A stretch of 59,703 nt of DNA, filler included, from Platydemus manokwari (taxonomy: Eukaryota): assembly GCA_037951405.1 (NCBI GenBank). It is 5 parts of 5 records of this genome, joined end to end, with 100 filler letters (N's around TTAATTAATTAA, not from the genome) between each part and the next. Parts side by side here need not be neighbours in the genome. Positions count along the whole stretch, not along the records: positions 9,275 to 24,070 come from JBBMOY011391425.1; 4 more parts are not named here. One strand, given 5' to 3'. Below the pieces are notes generated by a model. It saw only the letters and a program-made list of their open reading frames with translations. It made no database searches and was not told the DNA's origin. The position numbers and the translations under genes were made by a program. Within the stretch, counting starts at the first letter, position 1. Every line of letters begins with the position of its first letter. This document shows, in pieces, positions 1 to 24,070 of this stretch.

Positions 1-3000
1 TATGAAATTCTCTACATGTGCTGTATATTATATACTTAAATCTCTAATTATAATCTATATTCTGTATTCTCCCTATTATAAGTATTCTCAAAATTCTCCA
101 TATTCTTCAACTTATCTGGAATCTAGATTCACAATGATTGCCGCTACTGCTTTATGGAACATGAATAGAAAATAATTTAAGAACTTCAATCCAGAAATGT
201 ATTTAATAAAAATATTCTAACAATCATATTAATCATTTATACTTCTGATATAAATCTGTTTTCTTTTAAAATGACCTTTTAAATATCAAATCAATTTTGA
301 AATTCCCACATAAATAAATGAAAGAAATGTAGATGATACTATTTGATTTGATGTTAGCAGATAGTAAAATATTAATCGAAAAAAATAAAATTTTAAAATC
401 TTTCATATTAGATTAGTTAATAAAATGAATATCTCAATTAAATCAATTTCGACACCATTTGAAGACTTAGTTAATAAGAAAGCTGTTAGGTAACTTAGTC
501 TTCCCACATTGAAACGAAATTTCAATGTCAATATTATTGTTTTGTTTATATAAACATGAATTTGACATATGAGATTGGTCTATATGACACAGCATTATCA
601 ATATCGTTTTTTATTCATAAAATATGAAAACTATATTACATTATTGGGTCATTTTAGGGTCAGATTTCATTTCTTAGATTAATTACCAATATAATTAAAT
701 AACTGTGAATATATAACTCTGAACTTATATGAATTCTATATTTTTATTTTATATTTTATCTATTAGACTACAGTTGAAAAAAACCGGAAATTAAAGTTTT
801 GAAATTACTTAATTCTGAGAAATATTGATTTCTGCAAAAAAACTTTAGATTTTATTTTAAAAAATCAATGATAGGGCTGGCATTGAAAACTCGAAATATA
901 CGAATATATCATTAGCTCGAAAAAGATAGTCGGGAGAAAAATTTCTGCCTTCTCAGAGTTTTAAATATTCTTTCTGTAATATTATTTTATCAATCAAAAC
1001 CCCATTTGCATGTTCATAAATAATTTATTAAGAACTGACAGAAACAGTTTAAAATAATTTAAAACCAAGATATAGAATTTAATAGAAAAGGTCTATTTTT
1101 CTAGGTTAAATCTGTTATTTTTTTTGTTAAAACGGATTAGGCTTATTTCTCAAATTAATATGAAGAATTTGCAACAATGCGTTAAAAATTAGATAAGAAG
1201 TACAGCTGCTACGATTCTCAGGTAGGAAAACCAATTGAGAAAGTACTCGGAAAAAATTAAAGTCGAAAAGATATCGAGATTATTTGTCCTACAAAGTCTA
1301 AATAGCAAAAAGTGAAAGAAACTTTGACTCTAAACTCTTTAATGACCAATGAGATTTAACCCAAATTTTTGAAAAATTGCCTCAAACCATGGTAATTAAC
1401 ACGATCAAGAAGACATATGAACAGAGAGTACATTGAAGTAACCCACGTAAATATTTTAAGTTTTTTAACAGAAGCTCACCTCGACTGCTCAGGAAAGATA
1501 AATTTGTGGTAACGTTTATCATAATACCTCATTTAAACCTTAAATTGATACGACACCAACACGGTCGATGACAACAATTACCACAAAATTTTACAAAGGT
1601 TGAGGGAAAAACCCACGTCACTGGATTACTTTCTGAACTTTCATGTACTTGCTATTGTTATGGCTAGCTTGATAGTTTAAGTTTCTGTTTCGTGAATCAT
1701 GTACAAATAAAGCGCCCCAGACAAAATATTACTATTTGGAATGAAATTTCATTGATGAAGTGTATACAAGGTTGAATTTTTATGAATTAAAAACTTGGTC
1801 AAACATGTGATCCGAAATAACGGGAAGCCCATAAAATATTATGCAGTAATCGAGGATTCGTTATAAGCGATGATGAATGAAAGTGGAAAGTTATTGGAAT
1901 GGACTACCATTTTAGCTTTTTCAGATTTGAGCAGAGATAGTTTTACATATCAATTCTAGTTTTAGATCTGTTGATTCAGTTATAAGCCAACTTGTGGCCG
2001 ATTCTTTAGAACTCTATAGTTACGATATGGGCTATTGTGTTTCGAGAAAGGACATATTGGTCGTTCACAAGTTCTATATATTTTGAACATTATTTACTGG
2101 GAAAATATTTGTGACTTTGGTTATTTACAAGGACTTCATATTTACGAACATGACAATAAATCTAACAGTATTCATTACCTAAAATGGTTTAAAAAGGTAC
2201 ATGCACACGATTGTCAATGATGACCTGTAGTGAATTCAAACTCATGATGTCGTTTGTTTCATTCTAAAAATGATGATCAAGAAAAGTTTATACGTTCTTA
2301 GTTTTGAGAAGAATGAGGTTTTTGAAGAGACCGGGGTTTTATAGTGAGAACGGAAAGAAACAAATGATTGTACGAGATCCATTCATAGAAATCAGTGAAA
2401 TATCTGCCTGATGAGTTGTGTCATATCGGTTGTAAGAAATTGTAAATTAGTTGATAACTTTTAGAATATTTATTTCTTACCAAGTATGTTTTGAGTTAGC
2501 TATAACTTTGGAATTAAACAAGAAATTATCTCATCATACTAACAGATATCAAATGACTTGACCAAAAGATTGGTCAGGTTTGTCACTGATAGTAACAACG
2601 CTGGTATCAGAGAATTACCTTCTAGATAAACTTATAATTCGGATAAAATTTATTATCAATGCAATACACCAAAACTTCATTTGATAGTCTCCTTTTGATA
2701 CTTTATTCCATAAACGGATTTATACGAATAGACTTATATAACTAGATCATGAAGGAAACAGAGAATCAACACAAAAAACTTCGATATTGAAAGAATGAGA
2801 AATCGAATATTTTCTATTAAATCTATAAAAGTGAAACAAGATTTATAAAAAAACAACGAAGACCCTTAAAGAATTTTGAAATTTCGAATACCACGACAAG
2901 TACTTCTTTTTTTCTCACTATATCTCGAACCTTGAAAGTCGTTAAGAAAATTATCAAAACAAATGTCAGTGAGAAGTTAGACAATACTATTAGAAAATTT

Positions 3001-4359
3001 TTGTTTAAATATTTAAAAATAAGATTTATTATTATGAGTTTATAAAATGATTAACATTGTTTGTACTACTCATAGATATCAGATAAATTAACGCTTTCCA
3101 ATAAAATTTTAATTTTCGTGAACTATTCGACATGCTAAGACAATTTAATAGGTATCGAACAAAATATGATTTAATATATCTACTTAAATAATGTTTTTGA
3201 ATAATTGATGTTCTATTTACTCATCGGGATAATGTTTGGATCTTTAATGTATCCTTAGTTGTGTTAATCGAAAACCAGCATTCTAATGAAATAATTTAAA
3301 GTCTCAAGTATGATGATATTAAAATTAAAGCATATATAAATGGTCATTTATAATAAAATTATGCTCATATTTTGAAAACATAAACTATAAATTTAATTGG
3401 TTTAAATATATTGATTAAAAGTAATTTTTGGGTTGACCTTCTTAAATTGTTTTTAATTCCTCTTTAAAGAATTAATAACAACTAAAATCTACTATATGGT
3501 GTAATTAAGGACAACCTCTAATTTGAAATTGTTTTGCTATGAATATATTATTTAAATTGACGGAACACTTTACCATTGGATAATTTAAACAATTTATTAA
3601 TCTTTATGGAATTGAATCCATTTTAGACATTTTAATTAGGTTTTAAACACCCAATTACATTGCACAATGTTTGCCTAGCTGATTTATATCATGATAAATA
3701 TATTTAAAATATTTATTTATAAATTTTGAGTAATAAGTTGATCGATTTTATCATCATATGCAATTTCATCGGAAAAATGAATTATTAAATTAATTTTAAC
3801 ACTAACCAACCCAGTCATGATGAGTAAGAAAATTTTAGATCTGTAAATAGAATAGGCAAACATTGCCTTACTCTTTCATGGGATAAAATGATATCTGCAA
3901 AATATCTTTGCAAGAATTTATAATATGGAAAACATTCATCAACAAATTTAATTTATTTATCCATTATTGTTGTTTATCGGGAGAGACTCTCAAACTACAA
4001 TTTTTTTGAAAAAAATAATCGTTTCATCTTTTAATGGATCGGTTCGTTATTTTATTTTCTCTCGCTAAAATATCTCCAATTGTTGTTGGTAAAGGAATAA
4101 TTATTAGATAACATAAATGGAATCATCTTGTTTTACCGCTAATGTGTTAGAATTATTTTTTTTCATCTAAATTGACCCCACAAAAGAGTTTTTTTTAATC
4201 TCAAAATGACTTTGGTTATTCACCGTTTTTTCATAGTATTAACAAATATCTTTATTCCTGTTGTTATTGGATTTGACATTTGGAATTGCACTAAATTTTA
4301 TATCCATGTGCTCCAATTATGTGATAAAATAATATATTGAGTATAATATTTGTAGAATC

Positions 4360-4600
4360 TTATTTAGTACTAAATCTTATATTTTCTTGACCTACTGTTC
4401 ATCAATTGATATTTATGATTATCTCGGATGTAGTTCGATTCCGCCACGTCCTTACCATCTGAATATTTTATACCATTTATATACTCTTGTTCTCGACAAT
4501 CCAAATAATCGAAAACCTTCGGCAACATCTACTTTTCTGTATCAGAAACCTCAATAAATTAGAAATTGTAATAAGTATTGAAAAAACATTTTTCGTTCTG
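4360..4600 (-). mobile_element. Decayed mariner transposase N-terminal (HTH) fragment
   Basis: Minus strand reads, with frameshifts and stops, MLPKVF...LSRTRVYKWYKIF...ISIDEQ*VKKI*DLVLN. This matches the mariner HTH consensus (LSRTRVFEWxKRF...STDE..V.KI..LV). Confidence 0.65.
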
Positions 4601-6989
4601 ATAATGACGAATCTGATTTTTTAACCAATGGAATTTTACTTTGATTTCATAGGTAATACTATAAACTTACCATTGTCTAGATTCCTTAACAAGAATTAAC
4701 AGAATTGAAAATGCATTTCACTAGGCCAATTATCAATTTGTTTTACTTTTTTAAGTTCTATTTTAAAATTTAAGTAACCCAATTAAGATTTTAAAAATTA
4801 TATTAATTGAAATTGGGATCTATTTTTATAAAAAACTACAAATACAGAATTTTGGATATTCAGATCGCTAAGTTTTCTTTAATTTTTAAATTTGTTTAGA
4901 ACCGCTGTCATAATCTTTTATCAAAAGAAAAGGCATAAATTAAAAAAAATAATAGAAATCTATATCCAAATTCATATTCAAATTGGAATATTAAGATAAA
5001 ATAAATTATCATTAAATAGCTTAAAACATAATATTTCCTTTACTTATAATGTTAGGTTTGTAGCATAAGCATTATGAAGGTTTCCCACATCAATATACTT
5101 GTTTCGTAGTCTTAATTATTCTTGAAATCATGATTTGATAATTCACATTTTAGTGGATTTGAATTCTCGATCATTTTAATCACACCGGTATCATAGGGAC
5201 TTTTAGTTTCACTTGAGCATATCCATCAGAGTTATGAAGATCAAAATAACTATTGTAATAATATAATATTCGATATAACGAATAGTCTATCAATAATTAT
5301 ACTTCGTTAGTTAATTTTGTCAGCTTAATATCAGCTAAATTTTAAAATTATGTTAGGCGAATTATGATTACAATACTTAATAAAGATAATTTTACTGGAA
5401 CATAAATGATGGCATTGATTCATTAAAAATAAACATATATATATAAATATATGAGAATTTTAACATCAAATTTTCATCCAATCGTTTTATAGTCTGTACA
5501 TATATTACCAAAAACTATTTAATCGCTTCACGGTGTGATAGAAATTTCAGAGACATTAACAAAATCCCAAAATTTCTAATTAATTTGTAGCCATCAATAA
5601 TTCATAAATTCTCTTCAGGAAGCCCTTTGTAAATTGAAAAATAGACATTATTGGAATTGAAACATTATTGATAAAACAAAGTGAAAATTCACAATGTTCA
5701 AAAATATAATTTCAAATCACTTAAAATAAACCTCAATACAAATATTTGTAATGAAATTAAGATAATAGAAATTTAAAGAGTTCGAATATTTTGTATAAGG
5801 AGATACTAAAGAAATCAAATTTAAAATAAATTAGAATTTATGTCACATTGTAATGTAACACCATTGAAAAAACATTGATTTATTTGATTTGACGTTTTTA
5901 CTCCCATCTTCCAACAGACAATTACAGTTCAGTGACTTTACCTGATCCAGAATCATTCCTCGAAATGAACTAATCCTTTATATTGATATGGTATTTCCAT
6001 GTGGTTATAACACATTTTATAGTAAGCTGTTCGATTTTCTATTTTCTTTATGTATTCTGTAACAGAATAGTGAATTATCACGAATTAATTTTATGAACTG
6101 TTTTCATTAAATAGTAAAGTATAAGGTCTGACATTTGAATAAATAAATTAAACGATACAGAAAGTGAACGTAATCATTATAGTAAAGAGATTTTATAGCT
6201 ATATCCTTTCCCATTAGAAATTCTTGGTAAATTTTATTTTTCATCACATTGCCAGTGTTTATAGTTAACTTTCAGTCAAAATAAATACATTCCAAAGTAA
6301 TGATATTTAAAATATCAGAAATGTTCAAATATATAAGCGTGATAGTAATAACACAATAGGTTTTGATAAGAGATCCATAAACGACGTACCAGGGAAAGAG
6401 TGAGAAATTATTACAATATTATATTATTGATTATTAATAAAAATCTTTATTTTATAAAACCTATTGGATTTGGAATTCTTCTTTTATTTTTTTAATGAAA
6501 AAATATTAATATAAAATATTTCATTTCCCTTCAAAGAGAAACATACTTGTGACCGATAGAACAAGAAATTCTAATCTGCTTTGTTACCAGTGGAGAATAT
6601 CAAATTAATCATTTTTAGTCGATTTGGATTACCTTAAACACCTGAGTATGAAAGAAGTCTTTTTTTATAATCACAAAGAGTTAATACATTTAAGCTAAAA
6701 TCTAAAACTTTTTACCGGCTCAACAATGTCATAAATAAATTATGTCGTTTAGAAATTGATTCTTGATATAGCTGCATAAACTTATGGATAATAAATCTAC
6801 AATCAAAGCTAGTTTGTTTCTGAAGAGTTTGTTAATATTCCCATGATTTCATCACTGTACGATTAGAACTCAGTATTAATTTACTTGTTTTATTTATACT
6901 TCACCTAGACCAAGTGTTGTGATTATAAAACGGATTCAAATCAGTACATCCTTTGGATTGTTAGACAAATTGGCTAATGAAATATCGTC

Positions 6990-7350
6990 GTAATTTTATC
7001 AATTTAAATTTTACACAGCACATTCAACCATTTCGTGAATGTGTCGTGATTAGTGAGATGAAACCCAAATTTTCCGCCGTAAATGAAATTTGAGAGTTCA
7101 ATATCAATTATAGGATAATAAAAGTTAGTAAAAATTTTTATGATATTATTGAAATAAGTACAAATAATTTTCTTCTATCTTAGCGATGGAAGAAATTATT
7201 ATTCAGATCAAGAAAATGAAGGTTAGTATTGTATTTTAAAAAAGTTCCATCTAAATGCTAGTAGCGTCTCAATATTACAACTCGTTAATATCCAAAGTAT
7301 TGTCTAAGGTTTTGTTGGAAGAACGAATTGAAAACTATTTAAGATATTCA
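6990..7350. mobile_element. Highly decayed retroviral-type integrase fragments
   Basis: Minus strand ~7020-7080 reads DTFTKW. Plus strand ~7200-7345 reads SDQ...G FVGRTN*KL, resembling SDQG...NG.VERxNR.L. Many stops. Confidence 0.3.
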
Positions 7351-9098
7351 ACCTGAAAATTAATTAATCGAAATATTCATGCATTTAATATCGATCATTT
7401 AAAATTATTTGATTTTAGAATCCTCACAAATGTGAATATAAGTCAGATTAATTTTTATTGTTAAATAAGATGTTTAAATATATTAAATATTGATTGCTTA
7501 CAAGCCATTAGCCCGGTTTAATGATTAACTTTCTATAATCTTCTCGAGACAATGATCGATTACCTAGAAAACCATAATGGAAACTTAAAATAATTTGACT
7601 TATTAAGCATACCCAGGAAGAACAAAAATATTTTTTTTGGATTTGTAGGGGAATTTATTCGACGAAAGAAAATCTACGATGATTAATGTACTCAGCTTCT
7701 AAATATACATCAATCTTAGGAAAGTGCATTGAAGAATTATTTATTTATTTTTTGTATTTGAGTGATCTCTCCTATGAGTTCATAAAAGAATTGCTGATAT
7801 TTTAATGTTAATATATCTAATCGGGTTATGAGTTAGGCTGTAATAAATAATTAAAGAAAAATTGAAATTTCAATTTAAATAGGATTCTCAGTCTACATGT
7901 TTATAACAATCAATTATTTCTCCTTTTCAAAAGTCTAAGTCAAAGTACGAAAGAAAATTCTTTCAATGTATTTAATGAAACTATATTACATATATTTAGT
8001 ATAATCTCAATTCTGGCAACTAAAAATGGTTTTAAAACTATTAACCATTGTAACTTATAATTTTTTGATAACAAATACAAAGCCCAGAATTAAGAAAATG
8101 AAAGCATCGCTTAAGTCCTGTCATTCTCATCAAAAATCTGTATCATACAATCAAAATTTGTATTATCATTCATATATTTTGTGAATTATTTTTAACTTTT
8201 TCCAAAAAATCCATAAAATGTTAACGTTCAGACAATATAACTGCTCAAATTCTTATGGAAAATGTGAGAATATTTTTTTAAATATACATATGATTAATAT
8301 GTTTGGAGAAATACTGGTTAAATAGAATAATTTTGGGTTCTATTTAAGTTGGAATTTAATATATCAGCATACTCAAATTTATTATTATAAATTTAAGAGT
8401 TTGTTTTCAATTTTTAAATTCTGTTTTCAGAAAAATATCTTCGAATAATATTAATTATAATTATAAAATCATTTCTTTTTTGCGGCGAATTTATACAACA
8501 GTTCTGTTATTGTTTTTCTCAAAGGTAAAGCTTTTACGAGTATAGATTGATTTTAATGGGGTTTATTAAACTAATCTTTTTTCTATCATAACTTGTCATC
8601 AAGAGCCTCTGATTGATATTGAACTGGATCATGGATCAAGAAATATAATCTGTTTTCATCAATAAACATTTAAAAATTGGTACCAAAATTTAATCGATGA
8701 ATATTTTATCAATATTTGGTCAATGTCGAAATGACATTATTATTTCCCCTATTTTCTCTTTATTGAGTTTTCTTTGTTCTGGTGTCAATCACAATCATTA
8801 GATATTCCAGTAATAACACATATTGGATTGGATAAATAATTCGTTCTTGGAAATGATAATTTGTCAATGACGAATTTTAATTAATCAAATTGATCTTTCG
8901 ACACAATTTGGGATAAGACTAGTTTGACAATCTTTATGAGTGGATAAATTTTCCTTATGAGTTTGTTTTGATTTCATAACTCCAAATCAATCTGAAACAG
9001 AAGCCAATGAAAATATTTAGAAGAATCGATTTCAAAGTAAGACATGTGAGCAGTTCAGGAAAGTTTATAATTGTTTTAAATTTTAAAATTTTGTAATT

Positions 9099-9274: not shown

Positions 9275-10849
9275 TTATAATAATAAATAGATGATTCAAA
9301 CATAAATAATAATTTATAATAATTATTTTTTAAAATATATATAAATAAAAAGTAAAAATAATTAAATATTTAAAAAAATAAAAATAAAATCAACAAAATT
9401 ATAAATGAAAATTTAATTTAAAATGATGCTGAAAACCTATAAAAATGTGTGTTGAAAAATGAAATTTTAATACATTTATGTAAACATCATTTTTAAATAA
9501 GTACATTGTAGTTCTTGCATTTATAAAAAATATCATATATTATTATTGCCTCGGGGTAGTGGTCTGATCAACCACATAGAGAACAAAAATTACCAGACGG
9601 TAACATCAATGGGATAGTCAATTTCGAAAAATGTTTTCTATAAATTTCAAATAAAATGAAAATAAATTTCGAATAAAATGAAATATAAAATGAAATATAG
9701 AATTAAAATGAGCAGTGGTCTACTGTTGGTAAAAAAAATGGAGCCCCATAAATAAATAAATAAATAAAAGACCACTGTCCAACCACCAGTATTGTTACAT
9801 TTTTTCATAATGATTATGTTTATATTTATATTTTTATTAGAAAAGGTGATAGTAAATTTAGAAGTCTTTTTAATAAATATTAATTTTCAATTACCAGCTT
9901 CTTTACAAGTAGGTCTTAAACATTTTGAAAATGTTTTGTTCTTTTGTAATAATTTAATTTTTCAAAAAGGGGGGTATCTTTTTTTATTTTTTTTGGTGTG
10001 TGTTATAATAGCCCTTTCTCCCCTACTTAAAGGGTCTCGCTTTAGGGCAATATAATAAAATCTATATTTCTAAAAGTATAAGGTTTATAGTTTAGTTATC
10101 ACGATCTCAGTGAGATAACTCTACCAATCTGCTTATTAAATTCTCGGTCTGAGTTAACTTGTTTGAATCTAATTGTGATTTGTTTTGGTTAATTTTTTAA
10201 ATAAAACTTTATAAAGAACTTGAGTTTTTGTTTTTTAAAATAAATAACAAGGGAACGATCTCACGCTGTTGAGTTGGCAAGGCAACCTTTAAACATCACT
10301 CGCAAACCAACAGATTCAAATTGTTGTTATTCTCATATATTGTAACAATAGCATTGAGTTATTTTATTTTTGACTTATAACAGCTTTTATTATTATGATC
10401 ATTGATGTTGTACTGTGAAGACTAATCTTATACTATTTTATTTATTATTGGTTGAATTATAAGGTGGATACTGTCAGTTGATTAGCGATCACATACATAC
10501 ATTCAGTGAACACGGAAATTACCTACACACCTACACGTCAACTATAAAAAACGATTTGAACATTAATAAGTCCTCATTTATTACAATTTCATACAATCAA
10601 TAAATTCAAATCAAACATCCACACGATGCACAAACGCACTCTCCTATCCAAAAAATGTTATGGAGGCCTTTAGCAGTTGACCACGTGAAAGGAGTAGTTT
10701 CTGATGGTTAGTATCACGAAGAACGAAGAGATCCCGAACGAGGTAAGGACAACAGATTGGAGGATGCAAATTTTTCTGTCAGAAATCACCAAGAGGAATC
10801 CAATAAAAATATAAAAACAAAATAATTATTCTAAAAATAAAAATAAAAA

Positions 10850-12300
10850 TAGAAAATAGTAATAAATAAATAAAGCAATAGAAAATTAATCTAAAAATAG
10901 GAAATGAGAATTTTCAAAACAAAAATGGAAATAAGAAACCACAAAAATAGACGACAGAAGAATTTAATAAAAAGTTTAAGAAAAGAAAGAGTATAAAAAT
11001 AAAAATTAAATTAAGGACACACACAAAAATTTTCCAAATCAGAGGAGATAATTCACCAATTCCGACAATTTGATTAAATTAGTTCCTGTTGATACAACAA
11101 TTTCTCAAATTCACTAGTATCAATCAGATTAAATTAGTTCCTGTTTATACGACAATCTCTCAATTCACCAGTCTTTAATTAACGTTTTATCAGTCTTATA
11201 AAAGGAAGAAGAGAAACAGAAGAAAGAAAAACCTAAAACTAAGAGAGCAATTCACGGAGAAGCCACTTAAACGCGAATCAGCAAAAACTACGTACAGAGC
11301 CAAGGATACGCAGTTCGAACTTTAAAAGTTCTCCAATTAATATCCACCAAGAATAACAAATTTCTGTTCAAGAAACGTTCAAGAAGCCAGAAGTAGTAAG
11401 CATTTTGCCATTTGACTTAATATCCATAGCTTTTAAAGATTTTTGCTTAATAGTACCTCGCAATTGATAAACAACTTTTAAACATTATTTTAAAGAATTT
11501 ATATTTATATATTGATTTAATTTTCCCAATTATTTCTTCATAAATAAACAATTGACGATAAATTTTTATCATACTAATCCGAACATTGAAAGATACCAAC
11601 AACCCAGTAGAGTTGTTCCGGTATTGAAAACATTGAACTACCTAACTATATCGTTCATTACCTGCCACCAACAACTCTGTTCTGTTGTTCTGGTGACCCA
11701 CATCTAAAGCTAATTAACTAATCAATCATTTCCAATAACAAATCTATTCTAGATTGAACCCGGTTCAACTAGAATCTAACTTTCCTAAAATCTAAAATAT
11801 CAAACAAATCTTGTCCAAGAGGTTACGGTTCCACGTAGGCCTAACCTCCAATAAATTAGTAACTTAGGGCTCTTACCGGTAAACCTAAGAGACCACATCA
11901 AAAATCACGCGCTCTATCTACATAGAGTCAGTAAAATATGTAATTAAGCGTAAATTTAGAAATTCCCCTAAGCTTGGCCATTTGTCACATTTGTCAAAAC
12001 ATTTTATCAAACTCATTTTGTCAATAGATTGTATTTTATTATTTTAATATACATTTATAAAAAACTCGTTTTCTTCACAGCATAGTTTATAGTATCTTAT
12101 TATTTTAGTATATATTTATAAAAACTATTTGTCTTTATAGCATAGTTATATACAGCACCTTTGGAGTCAGGTGTTACGAAAACAATAATAAATATTGAAC
12201 ACGCATACGTTGGGATAAAATCGACTCACGTTAACCACAGACATTAAAACTTATAAACCTCAACAATATTATTATTAGGAATAATTATCATATAAAATAT
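10850..12300 (+). mobile_element. Repeat family A copy 1: non-coding 3' region plus probable PPT/3' LTR start of an LTR retroelement
   Basis: Homologous to the inverted copy at ~26890-28400. Identical islands include GTAGGCCTAACCTCCAATAA and the 28-bp GCACCTTTGGAGTCAGGTGTTACGAAAA, and similarity continues past TGTTACG. Includes a ~55-bp tandem duplication at ~11072-11173. Boundaries approximate. Confidence 0.65.
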
Positions 12301-13402
12301 AAGCAAAACAAGACTTTTAAAAATTCAAAAGGTCCAATTAATGTAAAAGTTCTTATATCAGGTTGGATCAACTTTGGTTTGTTGGATCGAATATTTGGTT
12401 TCGAATATATTGTTAATTAACAACATTTAATCATTATATGTTTTGATATTTATGAATTCATTGTTGTTGGATCTGAGTTCTATGTAAGCATGTCATGATT
12501 TACAAAATTCATTTATAAAATTTGTGCAATTCTATCCACCTATCGGTATTTATAATATTAATCATATTCTTAATTTTAATACATATAAATAAGCACTCGC
12601 TACATATAATTATAGAAAATGCTTAATTTGAACTATATTTGTAGATTGACAGTTACTGCACTAATTTGTGATCGTTTTCCTCCAAAACTGCATCTTTTTA
12701 GAAATTATGAGCCACCTATTAGTGGTTTGAAAACAACAATCCTCAGAAATAGTGTCGTAGATAATAAAAACGTTAAATCCGCCCAAGCTTCAAGTCTCTG
12801 GAGGAACACATAATCCTACCGTGTTCAGTAAAGATATAAAACATCCCTCAGAACAAGTAATTGATATTTTCCTATATTGAAAACTTACATTATTTTGAAA
12901 AATTCGTTTGGTGTGACTTTTAAATGTTCACGTTATGTGGAAATAATTCCAACCCCTTGTCCCTTTGTAAATTTCTCTTTTAGAAATAATTTTTAAGAAA
13001 ATAATTTTAAAAACATTTTTAATTTTTTATTTAAATACTTGAACAAAATTGTAGTTGTTCGTAATTAAATATTAAATACATAGGATTTTTAAAATCTACT
13101 AAAAATTTAATATTTGAAAAACGGGTCACAGAAGTTCAAAATGCAATTAATTGAAAATGTTTAATTGTTTAATGAGAGCACATCATTGAATTTGAAAATT
13201 CGAATATCATCATTGCTTGGTTGATATTTGGAATTTAAATATTGCATTAGTTGAACTCTATTGACTCCAAGTCAAAACTCTATTTCACCTTTTCCAAATC
13301 ATCTTCTTTTCAAGTATTTTAGGCTTGATTTTCATTGATTTAGATGAAAAATGAGATTTGTTTTAATATTAAAAGAACGTGTGTAATTTTTAAATAAATA
13401 AA

Positions 13403-13820
13403 ATGTTGATGGAAACAACTGATGTTTTTACTGTCGACCACGCCGAAATAAACGCTCTGACTACAGCTAAACGAGAAATGAGGCAGAAAAAACTTGCGAA
13501 TCTGCCACGAAACCTCAGGAGTTTTTTTTATTCAGAAATCATTAGTCTTCGATTCATCAATCCAAGATGCTAAGAAATGTTTCCAAACAACCAAAGATTT
13601 CGCCAAATTTAGTCAAATGAAAGTAACATTTGCACTTGATATGCTCTTGAGAGATGACGTCAAATAACTGTGGCAAGAACTCAGCAGTTTCTAAGAAGCT
13701 GTTTCAAATGAAGAAATTGAGAAATGGATTTTGGAAACTTTCGCACGTGCCAAAACAGTGTACGACAAGGTTAAGAATTTAGCAGCAATGTAACAAAGAC
13801 CAGATGAAAAATACCGTAGT
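13403..13820 (+). mobile_element. Decayed LTR-retrotransposon gag remnant
   Basis: Stop-interrupted frame ...FALDMLLRDDVK*LWQEL...IEKWILETFARAKTVYDKVKNLAAM*QRPDE, resembling a capsid-like gag ending in Q..xE. Confidence 0.45.
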
Positions 13821-16800
13821 TGTGGGAACTACGCAGGCAATTTTGACCCAAGCAAAGTATAAAATAAATAGAAATAATGACATAATTTTTTTTTTCAAAA
13901 AGTCAAAAATATCCATAAAAATTTTAAAATTTGTTTTACTGCACCAAAACTAATCGACACTAAGTTCATTAGAAAAAACCCATTGGGATGTAAAAATAGA
14001 ACAGACGATGTACGTAAAAAAGAAATAACAACACTAATTGATAAAAATAGACACTGAAATTAAAAACTGTACATATTAAAATTAGTAACATGTGCTACTA
14101 ATTTTATAATGATACAAAAAATAGCAACAAGATGCATGGCTCACAATAATGCATAAAATAGTATAAAAGCAGAGAGCAACAAGAAATCATAGCACTTCGA
14201 CTAATCACAATTACGACTCATTTATAAAACTGTAGGAAAATTTCGCAATTCGCCAGAACACAATTCCGAAGCTATTTTATGCCAATTTTTATCCGCAGAT
14301 TTTTATTACCGAAGAATTTTATTTCAAGAAGGCATTATGAGTAAATTTATTAAATTTTTAATTAAAATTCACCCCACGGCTAATTTCAGCCTTGTGGTCT
14401 ACTAAATTTCATAAGTTCCACTTCAAGTTCCCTACTTTCATTTTTGTTGCGAGAGGCTTACCCGAACACCTAAGCGGTACACCCTTTACTGATTTCTTGA
14501 CTACACTGTTTTCTCCCGCAATAGCGAACACCGCCTTTAGTATTTTAAATTCATTGTACTCAGATTATTAATTTTTGTTTATCAATACATTTTAATGTGT
14601 TATATTTTGCTTTTATCTATTGTATTTTATTCGATTATTATATACATTTCAATGTTATTTTTTATTATATTAATGAACGATCTAGCAACAACAACCTCTC
14701 ATTTGTTTGGAGTCCAGATAGGTTGAAAATTTTTGAGTGAATATAGTTATTTTTATTAAAGTCCTTCTGATAATCAATTACATCTTTTTACAAATTGTGC
14801 ATTTTTAATCTGAACTTATAATTATTACAAACCACTTCGACAATCTTTAACATAGTTTTTAACTTCGGACAAAGAAGCTGTTTTAGTGGTGTTTGACAAG
14901 AAAAACATCCTTGAATAATTTTTAAGACTATTTATTCTGCAAAGTCTAAATTGCAAGAAATTGAAAGGGTCTTTTACTTTAGAAGAAGAGAGCTAGCTGT
15001 CAATTTGGAGAAGTCAACTTCAACGATGCCGATAAACACCATCAAAAAAACATGCTCAGTGAGGAAGTCCTGTGCAGGAAAGAAATTTTAGTGAAAAGGA
15101 ATATCATCGTGCATTAGTTAATATTGTGAACCTAATATATATTGCTTGCGAATGTGATACTTGAATACTGAACGAATGTAATGATTGAATATTTCAGAAA
15201 AATGCTTCTGGAGAGAAATCCTTTGTACTTAGATTTAACGTTGCGAATTGTGCCTCTTACATGAATTCGAACTTTAATTGAAAAAACGTCGAGCTTTATC
15301 TGTCCGAGATAAACAGTGCATTGTTAGTGCAGTGAATAATTGAGCTTCATCTTTTGTACTGAAATAATTGTGTTATTTCTTATTTGATCTAGACTGTTTA
15401 GCTAGTTTTATTTTGAAGCCGTGATAATTAATTTTTATTTTTTCTGATTTTTTTATGATTATTTATTGTGTTGTCCTGATGATTTTGAATGTATTATAAT
15501 TTAAAATTAAATTTCTAAGATATTACCAAGGCAACGTGTATTAATAATTTTTATTAGTCATAATTTGATAATTTGTATTTTATTATTTTGTCCGCTCACA
15601 TTAATCAGTATTTTTTTAATTATCATGTATGAATTTTATATTATTTAAATTTATATTTAGACATATATTTACATATTTATGTATGTTCCGCCTATATCTT
15701 ATATGTGATTAGATGTAGCGTCTGCGTTACCTCAAAAATTCACTCAATCTATTGTTGATTTCATTTTATTAGTAATACTTTTTTTGAAGTGGATTCAAGC
15801 TAAAGTTTGTAAAGTGTGAATAGAAGATATTAACTAAAATTTAGATAATGGGGATTTTATATAAGATGATCAACAAAATTTACTCAATATGCTGCAGTTG
15901 AATTTCGAAATAATATACATTTTTACTAGATCTGTTTTGTTAAGCACAATTGTGATTAAAACACATTGTTAGACTGAGCTGAATTTCATAATAAACAATT
16001 GTGCATTTAATAATCTTTCGTTATATTTTTTTCAATTGGATTAAGACAGGATTTGATAGTCTAAGTTGAGTTTACAATTCTTCTCAACGGGTACATCGAT
16101 AGTTTTGTAAAGAGCTAGTAATGTTCTCAAAATTGTTGTAATCGATGTTTAGATAAAAAATAAGTTAAATTTTGCAAAGAGAATTTTTAATTTGTTGATC
16201 TTATATTCATTTTGTTTTTTTAATTATATATTTTTTATTTCTTTATGCTATTATTAGCATTTATTATTAGTATTTTTATCCAATTATTTTTATGGTTTTT
16301 ATATTTAATAACTAATTAATTTTATTTCCATTTTAATATTTTTTAAATTCCATTTTTATGCAGGATAATATTCTTTGTATTTATTGTTTGGGAATGATCA
16401 ATAAAAATGGGAAACAATATATGATTTTTTATTTATTTTATTATAGAGGTTGTACCCAAAAATACAATATCAACAAATATGATACATAGAATATTGATGC
16501 ATTATCATCAACATATGCTGCTGAAAAATTAGCGTTTGAGTATATCATCTAAAATTATCTGGAGTTGTGACTTATTTGTTCTCTTGAATACTTATTGTTC
16601 CTGGAAATTTTGTATGATTTCTTTTATTTATTGACAATATTAGCAATTTTAAATGTTTAAATTTAAATATTTAAGTTAATTTAATTTAACTATTCTGTTT
16701 AACGAGATAAGGTATAAATCATTGGTCAATTGATTATATAATTAAACACTTTATTTTTTTATAATTAACCTTTCTAAATTTGTATAAATGGTAAAATCCA

Positions 16801-16864
16801 AATAATGTTACAGTATCATTAATTATAATTCTTTTGTTTAAATATCATTAGTTTTAAAAAATAA

Positions 16865-18417
16865 ATGAAAAACTGTCCATTCAAAAATTGTAATTCATTT
16901 GGTCATATAAATGGAAAATATTCTCGTCATTTGACCACATCAGCGTGTCCTAATTACTATAATACTAATCACTCAGAATGGAGTGATATGGTTTATCGTG
17001 AAGAAGGTAAGCGCAGAAATAGTGATAAAATTTTTTCCTCAAGTCACATTTATTCTCGTGAGCCTAAACTTGTCGGGATTACTTCCTATAATTCTCTTTA
17101 CCAGTATCGTCGAGCTCAGCAATGTGTTATTTCTGATCCAGTTAGTTTAATTTTTTTATGCTAATGTGATTCGCGTGTCTTTAAGAATGAAGAAATTTTG
17201 CAACATTTTGAAATAATTTCTAGGCTAAGATCTAGTGAATCATCTACTGATGATTCTAAGCATCTTTTGGTTGGAAATAAATATCGAATTAAAGCAATTG
17301 TTTTTGGAAAATATGAAATTGCAACATGGTATCATAGTGACTATCCGGAAAATATATCTTGTTTTCCTAAAATTTTTATCTGTGAATTCTGCTTACGGTT
17401 TTTCAAATACGAAATTTCATATAAACGTCACATGGTAAATATACATTTAACTATCAGAATTGATAAACTTTTACTTTAGAACATTTGTGCCTTTAGTTGT
17501 CCACCTGGTGACGAAATTTATCGATATAAAAATAATTCATTTTTTGAAATTGATGGAAATTTGCATAAGGTAATTAAATTAGTACTTTTTAATTTTTACT
17601 TTTACAGGAATATAGTAGACGCTTGTGCTTATTAGCTAAGTTATTTTTAAAACAGAAAACAGTTAGTGACGTTGAACGTGTTGTGGATTTCGATTTTTAT
17701 GTCTTAACTGAGAATGATTCTGAAGGCTGCCACTTCATTGGATATTTTTCAAAGGTTTATTTAAAAATAGAATAAAATACATATTATTTATTTTAAGTTG
17801 AAAATGGAAAAGCAGAAGTTGAATAGGAACAAAGCTTTAGAAACAAATGTTATAATGTTTTACAATTTATCTTGCATTCTAGTAATACCACCCGAAATGC
17901 GAAAAGGATACGGGAAATTGCTTATCGATTTTAGTAATTTTTATTTTAATAAAAATTATATTTGTTATTTCGTAGGTTATGAATTAAGTTCAAAAGATTC
18001 AATCATGGCTTCTCCAGAGAGGCCATTGTCAGATTTAGGGTTGTTAACATATAGAAATTATTGGAAAAACGTAATCTTGGATTATCTTAGTGAATATGAG
18101 AAAGACTCGATATCAATAAGAAGTAAAAATTTTGTTAAAGAATTAATCTTATATTTAGTCATGAGTAATAAAACTAGGTTGCATCCATCTGATATTGTTA
18201 CAACTCTATTGTATCTAGGAATGATTAAGTATTATAAGAACGAATTTATAATACTTTTGAAAAGAGTAAGCATATTAGCACTTATAAATTTTTATTTTAT
18301 TTTAAGGATATTATAAATCAACATTTAAAATTGCAAGCAAAAACCAAGAATAAACAAAAGATATATTCAGATTATTTAGATTACAGTCCACAAATAAATG
18401 AAGACATCACCAATTAA
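16865..18417 (+). CDS. KAT7: MYST-family histone acetyltransferase KAT7/HBO1 (Chameau)-like, 8 exons, ~420 aa
   Basis: Exons 16865-17140, 17186-17434, 17480-17569, 17608-17754, 17798-17933, 17976-18122, 18159-18265, 18307-18417. All introns are GT-AG, 36-45 nt and phase-consistent. N-terminal C2HC finger [26 protein letters not shown] plus REP..L...YRRAQ are HBO1-diagnostic. MYST motifs present: [45 protein letters not shown]. Confidence 0.93.
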
Positions 18418-19036
18418 ATATAACTTTTAACTTCTTCCATTTCAACATCATCGCAATATTTCTTCATATGTGTTTTGTCAATATTTGGTCTAAATTTTAT
18501 AATAAATAATTAATTTTATATTAAAGTTTTTACGATAGTTCATTGTCTACGTATTCCGTATAAAATGATAATGGTTTCCATAAAACGACTGCATTTGATA
18601 GATCTGGTTGTAGACTAAAAATCAAATAATATTTATAAAGAATAGTAAAAATTAACATGTTTCTTAATATCGGTTTTGGTAAAATTTCCCCCATGATTAA
18701 ACCATTAGATTCAAATTTTATTTGATGAAATCTAAATAATATTAATTGTAAAATAATGTAACAATTTTACTCAATTTCGTCCTCCATTTCATCTAAATTA
18801 TCAGTTTTAATTTCTTCTATTACGACACCAGATATTTTAGGTTTTTGTGGAAAAGGAACCAATTTTGGCCTTTTGCTTTTATTGTTGTACAAGCTTAAAT
18901 TGATCATGTAATTTGCCATGATTTGGTCAGATATAAATATTTTTTTATAAATGGGATTTTCATAACCTATATTACTAAAAAAATATTTACACAAACAATG
19001 TGGTTTAGTTAACTAATCTTACCGCGATCTTTTCAT
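18414..19036 (-). CDS. HCFC1R1(HPIP)/CCDC117-like small protein, 5 exons, 149 aa
   Basis: Exons 19036-19023, 18974-18771, 18731-18657, 18614-18534, 18489-18414, with four phase-2 GT-AG introns (48, 39, 42, 44 nt). Motifs: KKIFISDQIMANYMINLSL (cf. HPIP RKQFLSEENMATHFSQLSL), AVVLWKP (cf. CCDC117 ELVLWKP), and an acidic DVEME near the C-terminus. The gene model is strong; the family assignment is by eye. Confidence 0.75.
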
Positions 19037-19749
19037 TTTATTTTAAAAATTGTAATTAAACTTATTGTGATCAAACAACGATCATTTGAGTAAATTATAA
19101 TATTCAATTTTTGGCAGATAGTGATAGTTATACAAAATAATTTCTTAATTATTTACTTAGCCTTCAAAATAATATCAGATATTATCATTAATAATCAAAG
19201 AAATTTAAAAATTATTTTAATTTAATTTTGAAATCTGTTTTTTGAAAAGATTGCTCTAAATTGCTTAATATTACTTCGAAGTTTGATGTCAACTTACTAA
19301 ATTAAATACTATCTATTAAAAATGACGTATAACCATTTTGTTAAATGACTTCATCCATATAACTAATTTTATCCATAAAAAATTGCATCAAACTATGCAC
19401 TGGATTTTGATGTTCTATAAGTAATTTTATTATTACAATAATAGTCGATGACAATATCATTAAAAGAAACAGAAGATGGTAAATTTTAAGTTAATGATAT
19501 GACTAACTTGACTAACTAACAACATTAACTTATTGTTGACCATCTTCAGCTTATCTTTAATTCCCGAAATTGAATATTTATTCCAGAATTCCATGCTAGT
19601 TAGACTTTTTTCATTATTTAGAAATCTGAGCGTCTGCACTATTTCTGCATCTTTATGCTGTGTTTCCTGAATTTTCTATATAAACTCCGACTTAATTTGT
19701 ATTTGGGCTAAATAAGTTTTCCGTTTTTGCTCTATCGTGATTCGTCTTG

Positions 19750-20910
19750 TAATGGAGCATTGCTACGATTCTCTCCTTTTCTAAAATCGAAATAATGTCC
19801 TGAGAGGGCCGCCATCCATGTTTGAAATTGAGGACTGATCGGTTTCCGTGTCAAGTTCAAGCATACAAGGGTCTTTTGATCGGTTGTCACAACGAATTTC
19901 TTCTCCTACAAGTATTGTCTAAAGTAAGTAACATAGTCGTCAATAGCCATCACTTTTATTCTGGTAACACAGTATTCTTTCTCGTGACTAATCTGAGGAA
20001 AATTTAAAGAAACTAATAATAATTTAAAATAATAATTTCAATACTAAATTTAATTACAATTTTAATAAAATAATAATCAGTTTCAAAATAAAAAATAATA
20101 TAAAACAAAATAATTTTTTATTAAAATTATTATTAGTTTCTCTAAATTTTCCTCACAACTAGTGATTAATAAAAACCTGTAAGCTATAACTACCTCTGTT
20201 CTTTCTTCAATAACTTGTCTTAGAACGGCCCGATTGCACCGAAACTCGCTTCCGAATGGAGTACATGTATGGTGTTTTCTCTTGGGTAATACAGAATTGG
20301 TGCTTCAAATAGTGCCAATTTTAGCTTCTAAAAACTTATTTAAGCCGATTATTACCATTGTAATTCCTTATTTACATCTGCGATTGGGATGGGTAATGGA
20401 ATGGGTATTACAGCATAATCCTTGATGTATAACCTGTAATAGTTTGTCAGACTTAAAAATGATCGCAGTTTAGTCGTACACTGTGGTACTGTTCGATTTT
20501 GTAGCAATTAGTTTGTATGGCCTTGGTACTAACCATGTGGCCTAAAAACCTCACTTCATCTTTGATTAGCGTACATTTCTCCGGATTCACTTTAAGACCC
20601 AACTCTTGAATTCGTCGAAACACGGCTTCCAGTAGATTGTCATGCTCCTGCTGAGTTTTTTTGTATATCACACATCATCCACACATACCACAACGCCCTT
20701 AAACATCAATTCGTTCAAAATCTTATGCATTATATTTTGAAAAGTTGCTGGTGCTGTAGATAGTTCAAACGGGAGACTGTTGAAACACTATGGGCCGGTT
20801 CTTGTGCTAAAAGTTGTGCAATCTGAGCAAAAAGCATGTCCTAAATCTACTGAGGAGAATTATTTAGCATCTGACAAACAGTCTAGAAATTGATGGATAT
20901 GGAACCAAGT
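19750..20910 (-). mobile_element. Ty3/gypsy pol remnant (RT-RNase H), pseudogenised
   Basis: RT: LPFELSTAPATFQNIM...VVVCVDD...EHDNLLEAVFRRIQELGLKVNPEKC...FLGH. Thumb: NYYRLYIKDYA. RNase H: APILYYP...SEASFGAIG...VIAY and YCVTR...FRQYL*EKKFVVTTDQ. Multiple stops and frameshifts. Confidence 0.9.
19992..20157. mobile_element. 166-bp foldback MITE inserted in the gypsy RNase H (possibly Ginger/TDD-type)
   Basis: ~35-45-bp inverted repeats TGAGGAAAATTTA(A/G)AGAAACTAATAATAATTT, termini TCT...ACA, and flanks ACTAA/ACTAG (5-bp TSD with 1 mismatch). Confidence 0.7.
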
Positions 20911-20969
20911 TCCTTATAAAATTGAATCTCAATAAACGATATTACCAATGAAAGGGGATATATGTAGAA

Positions 20970-21690
20970 CAAAAATCTTCCTGGAAGATTGACGATATGA
21001 ATTTTTAAAAATACCGTTTTTTATCAAACACATCATCAAAATTCCAAAAACTGATGAAGATGATATTGAGTGAGATTACCCATGTAATTGTGTATATCAT
21101 TTATATGGTAATATATTTGTCAACATTTGCAAAAAAAATCTCGCAGATATACCCCAAGTATTATTCAGATATAGGAAAGAGAGTCTAAAGACTAATTCAT
21201 CTAAATTCAAATAAACCCAAAATAAAGGTCACTTTTTGAACCACGTTATCTCATCAGAAAACATTGAACCTGGTGCTGCAAAGATGGGAAGGGTTATTGA
21301 GGTTTTAGGGACACAAAACTAAAGCTGAGATATTTCTATGGATAATATTATTTTACTTTTATTATTATTGTTATTATGCTATTATAGTATTATTATATTT
21401 CTATAAATAAAGCAATGGAAAAGGCGGTAAATAGAAAAAAGACAATAAAAAAGAATAAAAACTACGAGAATATCAGCAAAACGCCTGTGAGACGTTAAAA
21501 GCAAATTTAATATCAGGTCCTACATTTCAATACTTGTAAATGAAAAAATTATTTATCCTGATAACCAATACTGGTTATTGATCGCTTTAGGTTATGAAGA
21601 GAGAGAGATAAACAATGTAATTTTATCTACGAATGGGTATCTGAATATGACAGAAAAGAAATAGTTCACTACATAAATGTTGAGCATATC
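20970..21690 (+). mobile_element. Second decayed gypsy RT/RNase H fragment, opposite orientation
   Basis: VLFRYRKESLKTNSSKFK*...FLNHVISSENIEP and CETLKANLISGPTFQY...FILITN, with many disruptions. Confidence 0.6.
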
Positions 21691-23070
21691 ATAAATCAAT
21701 CAAAAAGGTCACAAGGACCAAATAAAGAACCCTAAAAAGGGTCAATACACACAGCCCCGATAAACACACGTGCCGTTAACCAATCATATTCGTTCTAATG
21801 TTAATCCATATTTAGAAGCTAAAAATCGTAACGCACATAGTTAAAAATGGTAGCAAGCTCAAATATCCGCCAATGGCACAAGAGATGCAAGGAAAATTTC
21901 AAGTAAATCGATCCACGAACAAATTCAGCAAATGGAAAATGAAGATTCTTAACATCAACCATACACACCCAAAAGGCCTATAAAAGAGGTTGAGTTCCAT
22001 GAAGATCTGCCTGTCTCTTTTGGTCGGTAACTTGAGTGCTTAGCCTATCTCTGTGTGATTTTAGAAATTAGTCTTTTTGATTACTTTTCATTATGTTTTA
22101 GACCTCCGGGTGCTGATATCACTTTGAGTTATTTCCCTTGTAAATTGTGAAAAGGTTGGACTTAATATATGCTCCCTAAAAGTGTGACCACAGTTTGATC
22201 GAGTTGCCAAATATTACAATAAAATTGCAGTTATTTCGATCAGTCTTCTAGAATCTCACTTCAATCTACTTCTCACCAAAAAATCCAAAAATAAAAAAAA
22301 CTACTGGCAAGTCCCAATATTCGGCGCTGACACTTACTATGGATTGCAGATGGATTTCTCAATCATGAATAGGAACTCATGACAGAAAAAGCTCAAAAGT
22401 ATAAAAATTAAACAAGGGTGAGGGATTTCCCACCGCCTCAAGAATATCATGTTTATGCTTAATAAAATTTAAATTTTTTTAAAAAATTTTGAAAAGATTT
22501 GCTGTTTTTGTTGTTGAGACTTTGAGTGTTAATGAAATTTTCAGATATACATTGTTGATCGATAACCCAACACAAAGATAAGTTAATTTATGCAATCTAT
22601 GAGCGTATGCAGTATTTATATGGATCAAAAAGAATATCATAAACGAAAACATAAACCACTTGTAAGTTTGAATAAATTCATTACAAATAAATTCGACTAA
22701 ATGGGCTTTGAAGTTCCATTATTACAAGCAGGTACGTTACTTTAGTTGTCAAGTTATAATTTAAAAATAACCATATACAAGAGTGTACACTTAATAGAAA
22801 CATTTACGAAATTATATTAAGCAGTTCCAGAGAAAGAGTAACAAAAAAATAATCATAGAATGGATACGAAAAACCAATGGATAATGGGATTTATTGTTAA
22901 GGAAGATAACCGTACTATAGTAAAAATAGTCAATGATAAGATAAAAATTATCAAAAATATTCCAAAACTGTTATTAGAGCATAAAGTAAATAAAATGTTT
23001 AGAGAGATGTTATAAATTTTCATTAATGATTTATAGATTGAATTCAAGTTCGAATTACAAGTGAACAATT

Positions 23071-23284
23071 TATTACGTTTGGGCCTTATTAATTTTATTG
23101 TTTTATTAAGCTTAATCCTATTCTATATTACTATTGTCTTAATCAGTCTTTATGAGGTCTTGATTAAGGCCACCGGTGTAATCCACCTTATTTTGATGGT
23201 CCTTCACCTCGCACAACCTTATTGTGTGAAGACAATTATTGTGGCAATAGTGATATTTTTTAATTAACTTAACTACTAGTCTCT
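23071..23284. repeat. Repeat family B copy 1: ~210-bp structured dispersed repeat
   Basis: Same-orientation homologue at 52057-52269, with nested inverted repeats conserved in both copies. Confidence 0.85.
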
Positions 23285-24070
23285 AATTATTGTATATACA
23301 GCAACTTATAAATGACCTTACCAACGCCTGGACAAAGAGACGATTAACAGACTCTTACTTATGGAGCAGAACCAAGTACCTTTCAAGATTTTTGAGCAAC
23401 AAAATCGATAATAAGAGATAACGATACAATATATAATATGGATTAGTATTTTACACGAATGGATCTTACTGAAGAGACATCCAGTAAAAGACTGGGCATA
23501 TAGTGAATATTTTTCTTCTGCACTAGGCACCACTCTATTGTGAGATGATTAACTTGCAAAGTAATGTATCTTCTCCAACTGGTGTGGCGTATATAGGTGT
23601 CTTAGGTATTGCAAAACTAATGGCAGTGAAATTATGACTGCTGCCTTATGAAGGCAGCAATGAGTCACTAGCAGATATTCTCTGCGATTAAATCTAATGC
23701 CACTGAATTTATTATTTTATCGATAGAATTTATTCACTGGTGAGAGAAATTCTCTCTGAACAGAGAAAATTCTCTTTCGATTAAATTTAATCGAGTGATT
23801 ATTTTATTCTGCAACAGAATTTATATGCGCGATAATAGATGGCATTTTATTTGTCTATGTTATTGCCTAAAATTTTATTGTGTTAACATTTTATAAATTA
23901 ATTTATTATTTAGGGAATTTCGATGGAATTTGTCTAAGAGGGTTTAACTAATATTGTTATTTTACGTATATATATTAGGTGTATTAGTATGATTCCGGCT
24001 TTTTTTTTAAAAACAAAAACATTTTTTAAAATATTTATTTAATGAAATTCAATCAAAATATTTTCCATTT

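Follow-up and report, generated by a model that had tools for sequence, protein, structure and literature searches.

Two protein-coding genes converge on contig C1391425, which is 14,796 nt long, has a GC content of approximately 27% and occupies positions 9275-24070 of the window (the whole stretch of DNA that was analysed, 59,703 nucleotides of the Platydemus manokwari assembly, filler included). The plus-strand gene encodes a KAT7/HBO1-type MYST histone acetyltransferase, and the minus-strand gene, referred to here as the small gene, comprises 149 codons. On direct reading of the two strands, the KAT7 gene ends in ACC AAT TAA, with its stop codon at 18415-18417, and the small gene ends in TAT ATT TAA, with its stop codon at 18416-18414. 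The coding sequences (CDSs) have the tetranucleotide TTAA in common, a dual-coding stretch of 4 nt that includes both stop codons, and there is no intergenic space between them. A sequence-only reading of this DNA had described the overlapping stops, the shared TTAA and the zero spacing; its coordinates are exact, and the positions at which it began the two last exons, 18307 for KAT7 and 18489 for the small gene, are the first bases of those exons. The features of the locus are collected in Table 1.

Table 1 Features of the convergent KAT7/small gene locus, in window coordinates.
Feature	Position	Strand	Basis or remark
KAT7/HBO1-type MYST histone acetyltransferase gene, traced extent	16865..18417	+	Pfam, tblastn
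KAT7 antepenultimate exon, ends ISIR	17976..18122	+	GT..AG borders, phase, orthologue length and register
KAT7 intron, 36 nt	18123-18158	+	After antepenultimate exon
KAT7 penultimate exon	18159..18265	+	Orthologue alignment, borders, phase
KAT7 intron, 41 nt	18266-18306	+	After penultimate exon
KAT7 last exon, stop TAA 18415-18417	18307..18417	+	Translation; orthologue C termini (DLIxxYLEK...LKWKP...)
TTAA common to both CDSs, stops included	18414-18417	both	Direct reading
Small gene exon 1, ATG AAA AGA TCG CG (MKRS and split R)	19023..19036	-	MKRSR start of P0001
Small gene exon 2 (NIGYENPIYKKIFISDQIMANYMINLSLYNN...VPFPQKPKISGVVIEEI...)	18771..18974	-	Homology to P0001 and P0002
Small gene exon 3 (FHQIKFESNGLIMGEILPKPILRN)	18657..18731	-	P0001 69-91, score 69 versus shuffle maximum 38
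Small gene exon 4 (LQPDLSNAVVLWKPLSFYTEYVDNEL)	18534..18614	-	P0001 93-117, score 103 versus shuffle maximum 43
Small gene exon 5, last, acceptor aaaatttag/A	18414..18489	-	P0001 123-138, IQKMSMGKKYF-DVEME
Six-codon C-terminal extension, GAA GTT AAA AGT TAT ATT (EVKSYI)	18417..18434	-	Absent from P0001 and L005
AATAAA, candidate poly(A) signal in last intron of small gene	18501..18506	+	84 nt past KAT7 stop
Two overlapping AATAAA, candidate poly(A) signals in last intron of KAT7	18291..18301	-	5′ ends at 18301 and 18296
AATAAA inside KAT7 CDS	18393-18398	+	17 nt ahead of stop
ATTAAA across KAT7 stop	18413-18418	+	

The identity of the plus-strand gene as KAT7, proposed in the sequence-only reading, is borne out by Pfam searches of its separate exon ORFs. 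The N-terminal C2HC zinc finger (zf-C2HC, PF01530, 2.5e-11) is located at 16871-16957, the MYST zinc finger (zf-MYST, PF17772, 2e-17) lies directly before the catalytic core, and the acetyltransferase domain (MOZ_SAS, PF01853) was matched on two exon ORFs (9.7e-13 and 1.1e-26). This domain order is that of KAT7/HBO1 (MYST2), and the acetyl-CoA motif is present. An N-terminal C2HC zinc finger sets HBO1 apart from the Tip60, MOF and MOZ types. The closest named database relatives are KAT7/MYST2 proteins; however, the window gene is only 42-47% identical to these best matches over the MYST core, and a search with a KAT7 fragment returned only distant relatives in the same range of identity. The stretch that separates zf-C2HC from zf-MYST appears short against the usual KAT7/HBO1 layout, and the gene may start either at the ATG at 16865 or elsewhere.

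Three orthologues (P0013, P0004 and P0012) are colinear with the KAT7 gene over 17303-18265 (tblastn). Its last three exons have GT..AG borders and matching phases, and are colinear with the orthologue segments SPEKPLSDLG...ISIK and then DLIKDYLEK...YPSALRWKP. The tails of the orthologues differ in length beyond the C-terminal Y/W-x-P motif, so a stop codon eight codons past this motif is unremarkable. Reading of the sequence by eye revealed no plausible donor site within the last exon. Further upstream, at 17795-17880 (plus strand), the exon that follows the ...GYFSK exon apparently includes additional residues ahead of the conserved NLSCIL; the orthologues have approximately EKNSxxNYNVSCIL at this segment, whereas the window gene has an apparent insertion before it.

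Five exons, with GT..AG borders throughout, make up the 450 nt of the small gene. Its introns are 48, 39, 42 and 44 nt long with a GC content of 7-23%; the donors are GTAAGA, GTAAAA, GTTAAT and GTAAAA, and every acceptor ends in TTTAG. When each exon was translated alone, exons 1-5 matched, in order, residues 1-4, 6-67, 69-91, 93-117 and 123-138 of P0001 (UniParc UPI000605C9B0), a protein of 138 amino acids from a related organism; this protein has no contig on record and may derive from gene prediction, not from a cDNA. This colinearity supports the gene model, including the terminal exon. The scores of exons 2-4 lie far above those of 500 shuffles, and exon 2 is 77-79% identical to P0001. 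The alignment of exon 5 reaches the last residue of P0001, with a score equalled by 7 of the 500 shuffles. Word searches, in which the stop-free stretch around exon 2 was used, found only P0001 and a second protein, P0002 (54 amino acids), which is 76% identical to exon 2. P0002 comes from a soil-metagenome contig of 960 nt (L001) that has the same MKRSR mini-exon, intron and exon 2, and ends inside exon 3. Both genes of the pair thus appear to be spliced, as had been proposed, with homology backing both terminal exons. The introns at 17934-17975, 18123-18158, 18266-18306, 18490-18533, 18615-18656, 18732-18770 and 18975-19022 are all tiny (36-48 nt); several of these remain open in frame, and ORF lists read straight through them.

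The label HPIP/CCDC117-like, which the sequence-only reading had given to the small gene, remains a lead. All searches with the two genes were performed exon by exon. The Pfam HPIP model (PF15226) has no match to the small gene exons (E≤1) or to P0001 (E≤10), and scanning all six frames of the assembly with it gave no match. The CCDC117 model (PF15810) matched neither the small gene exons nor P0001 nor the ORFs of a second homologue described below (L005), and, when the entire assembly was scanned in six frames, its sole match was an unrelated contig (E=1.4). A phmmer search with P0001 against 1.84 billion representatives returned only P0001 itself, P0002 and a spurious repeat protein (P0003); an atlas search with exon 2 gave no usable match, and neither of two metagenome scans, with P0001 and with the exon 3-4 ORF as the respective queries, produced a match. 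The protein-language-model neighbours of the small gene include a CCDC117 cluster (0.88) and a CCDC117/HPIP cluster (0.83), both below the value of 0.9 that the tool treats as no more than a lead; the top match is an unnamed fungal cluster (0.94).

The small gene product is similar in size to the HCFC1R1 (HPIP)/CCDC117 family, yet it matches neither of the two Pfam models. At the level of motifs it seems to resemble human HCFC1R1 (HPIP): it has a start rich in K and R, F-[IL]-S-[DE]-x-x-M-A-x-x-x-x-x-L-S-L-x-N, L-W-[KR]-x-P and an acidic ...[DI]-M-E C terminus. The small gene is possibly an HCFC1R1/HPIP-CCDC117 relative. HPIP is cited as a nuclear export factor of HCF-1 (PMC3258183).

The same assembly contains another homologue of the small gene, which is more divergent (L005, G000:C664763, approximately 1773-1090, minus strand). 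It comprises at least three exons and carries ...NFVPFPQQPKTNGVIIEEI... and ...AMVLYKPI...; it matches neither the HPIP nor the CCDC117 model of Pfam, and no KAT7 gene lies beside it. The L005 homologue could represent either a paralogue (HPIP-type versus CCDC117-type) or the orthologue from another animal in the mixture of organisms that the assembly represents.

The surroundings of the gene pair contain a reverse transcriptase fragment (Pfam RVT_1, 2.2e-09) at 20456-20671 on the minus strand, approximately 1.4 kb upstream of the start of the small gene. This fragment is retroelement debris, and the neighbourhood is not generally compact. Elsewhere on the contig, an ORF at 12619-12813 (plus strand) contains ...CDRFPPKLHLFRNYEPP..., a segment presumably reminiscent of patatin-like phospholipases, and has no Pfam match as a single exon.

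The geometry of the junction has direct consequences for the 3′ ends of the transcripts. As there is no intergenic space, the 3′ untranslated region (UTR) and cleavage site of each gene must be antisense to the last exon or intron of the other, and the proposal that any 3′ UTR of either gene is antisense to the partner is sound as a matter of geometry. We infer from this arrangement that the 3′ UTRs of KAT7 and the small gene overlap, and the transcripts would constitute a cis-natural antisense pair if expressed in the same cells. A search of sequencing runs for this stretch found a single run, the DNA source, and no RNA run. A convergent pair of this kind is defined by opposite strands, facing 3′ ends and at least 1 nt in common, all of which are found here in the CDS ends themselves. 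The AATAAA at 18501, which had been reported to lie inside the last intron of the partner, is present there, and the pair of overlapping AATAAA hexamers on the minus strand lies 113-118 nt past the small gene stop. The frequency of AATAAA in this piece is 3.9 per kb per strand and the introns have a GC content of 7-23%; hexamers in the partner's introns are therefore expected by chance, and poly(A) hexamers are not commoner than chance. The candidate signals AATAAA at 18393 and ATTAAA at 18413 would permit a very short KAT7 3′ UTR if used. The predicted RNA fold of the junction is nothing unusual (z = -0.29), with no hairpin. An imperfect inverted repeat of 29 nt (72%) is mirrored about the TTAA; its score lies within the top 2.5% of all centres in the piece, which corresponds to chance level.

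The overlap had also been proposed to be constrained, and this proposal is unsupported and in part contradicted by the two homologues. P0001, the closest orthologue, has the C terminus ...KKYFDVEME and then ends, and the L005 homologue reads ...YEDIEME followed by TAA, whereas the window gene reads ...KKYCDDVEME and continues with EVKSYI before its TAA. Both homologues stop six codons earlier, right after EME; the exact sharing of the stop is therefore lineage-specific. Of the earlier interpretation, the two real-looking spliced genes, the UTR geometry and the AATAAA at 18501 stand, the constraint on the overlap is unsupported, and the HPIP/CCDC117-like label is unconfirmed.

The exact sharing of TTAA seems to have arisen recently as a side effect of a stop shift, as far as can be judged from these sequences. 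The coding ends of KAT7 and the small gene would already have been tightly convergent, approximately 14 nt apart, with the ancestral stop of the small gene at 18434-18432, directly following EME, a position that is now occupied by GAA in the window. Once this EME-adjacent stop had been lost or moved in the lineage, translation would run on for six codons to the first in-frame stop, which is the reverse complement of the AAT-TAA of KAT7, giving a shared TTAA that is incidental. As 7.5% of the codons in this AT-rich piece are stops, a run-on of six codons is typical. Any T-TAA on one strand provides a TAA on the other strand in one of three frames, and the sharing of TTAA is probably not more than chance, given convergent CDSs approximately 14 nt apart. 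The direction of the shift is the one suggested by the two homologues, and we infer that there is no selection on the overlap itself. In all, the locus is likely to be an ordinary convergent pair of spliced genes whose common TTAA resulted from a stop shift, in an animal with an AT-rich genome and tiny introns. The locally unusual zero spacing counts against this reading: the surroundings are not compact, with a reverse transcriptase fragment 1.4 kb upstream of the small gene.

The same observation would speak for selection on the overlap, under which the two genes would form an obligate sense-antisense unit with stops locked together and with 3′ ends that couple expression, whether by transcriptional interference, by dsRNA or small RNAs, or by masking each other's 3′ ends. 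With no intergenic space, the transcripts would be complementary if co-expressed, and, as the surroundings are not compact, this piece gives no picture of a genome in which genes are packed tightly as a matter of course. However, the proteins of the two homologues end earlier and thus do not conserve the exact overlap; only 4 nt are dual-coding, no structure or palindrome exceeds chance, and the poly(A) hexamers occur at background density. We regard selection on the overlap as unlikely. A conserved, selected 3′-overlapping antisense unit, which would couple or mutually exclude the expression of the acetyltransferase and a putative HCF-1 regulator (by dsRNA or small-RNA formation, or by transcriptional collision) and in which each gene would have its poly(A) signal in the partner's last intron, is very unlikely. 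Antisense pairing would instead be negligible if the mRNAs were nearly devoid of UTRs and were cleaved at or just past the stop by means of signals within the CDS. The plus-strand AATAAA and ATTAAA hexamers within and across the end of the KAT7 CDS would suit such cleavage, but AATAAA and ATTAAA are absent from the last exon of the small gene and its vicinity and appear first as the pair downstream in the KAT7 intron, and such hexamers are frequent by chance in AT-rich sequence, which makes this arrangement unlikely.

The join itself could be an artefact, either of a wrong terminal exon or of a chimeric contig in a mixed-organism assembly, in which case the genes would not truly abut. The assembly is highly fragmented, with 911 Mb in 1.99 million contigs averaging approximately 458 nt each. 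A six-frame Pfam COX1 scan detected at least four full-length mitochondrial COX1 genes, with TGA read as sense, that are 66-80% identical mutually (contigs C1514745, C1389203, C1344449, C1440324 and others, L012-L017, plus many fragments). The presence of several distinct COX1 genes indicates that the assembly represents mixed animals rather than one organism. A KAT7 gene with a C2HC finger and the occurrence of relatives in a soil metagenome suggest that the gene pair belongs to a small, AT-rich invertebrate. The alignment of exon 5 to P0001 is also short, as its shuffle scores reflect. Against an artefact, a Logan contig of 2,688 nt, built by another assembler from the DNA source run, crosses the junction; it spans 16523-19210, introns included, with no differences and at an even depth of approximately 10, and the join is therefore independent of any one assembler. 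Moreover, GC content and intron style are alike on both sides of the junction, exon 5 has the C-terminal D-V/I-E-M-E motif of the family in the expected order, the last exon of KAT7 matches the C termini of its orthologues, and the assembly contains only one copy of the locus. An artefactual join is accordingly highly improbable, and an ordinary convergent pair with a shifted stop remains the preferred reading.

Close convergence at the 3′ end of KAT7 was also observed in a distant, GC-richer animal. On its KAT7 contigs (L006 at 6001-8165, GCA_046766255.1; L007 at 2645-4809, a Logan contig), a WD40/LisH protein of 513 amino acids was called in convergent orientation, and 62 nt separate the end of this call from that of the KAT7 MOZ_SAS ORF. 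Tight convergent packing at the 3′ end of KAT7 is therefore not unique to the window. No homologue of the small gene was detected on the KAT7 contigs of distant animals (L006-L011), which have other neighbours.

Two classes of known arrangement resemble the junction. Bacterial and organellar 4-nt CDS overlaps share with it the use of one short palindromic or shifted sequence for the termini of two genes. Such overlaps are usually same-strand stop/start overlaps and are linked to translational coupling in operons. Here, in contrast, the genes are spliced, convergent and nuclear; each requires a separate poly(A) site, and no mechanism of coupling is applicable. The other likeness is to convergent cis-natural antisense pairs, in which protein-coding genes on opposite strands overlap at their 3′ ends. 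Convergent overlap is dominant among human RefSeq/RefSeq antisense pairs (56.7%), and convergent CDS/CDS overlaps, NPR2/SPAG8 among them, are on record (PMC2811022). In genomes with good annotation, convergent pairs are the most frequent kind of overlap between protein-coding genes. The KAT7/small gene pair differs from known convergent pairs in that the overlap involves the stop codons themselves (4 nt) and the introns are only 36-48 nt long, and in that the overlap of the transcripts is deduced from the CDS geometry.

The KAT7/small gene pair belongs to a well-known class, and current knowledge is not challenged by it. If the overlap were constrained, the locus would offer a natural case for the reciprocal placement of poly(A) sites and for antisense regulation of a chromatin enzyme. 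As an ordinary pair with a shifted stop, it would serve as a documented example of how a small shift of a stop codon turns a tight convergent pair into a CDS/CDS overlap. For annotation, it means that both stops are real and that neither gene model should be trimmed.
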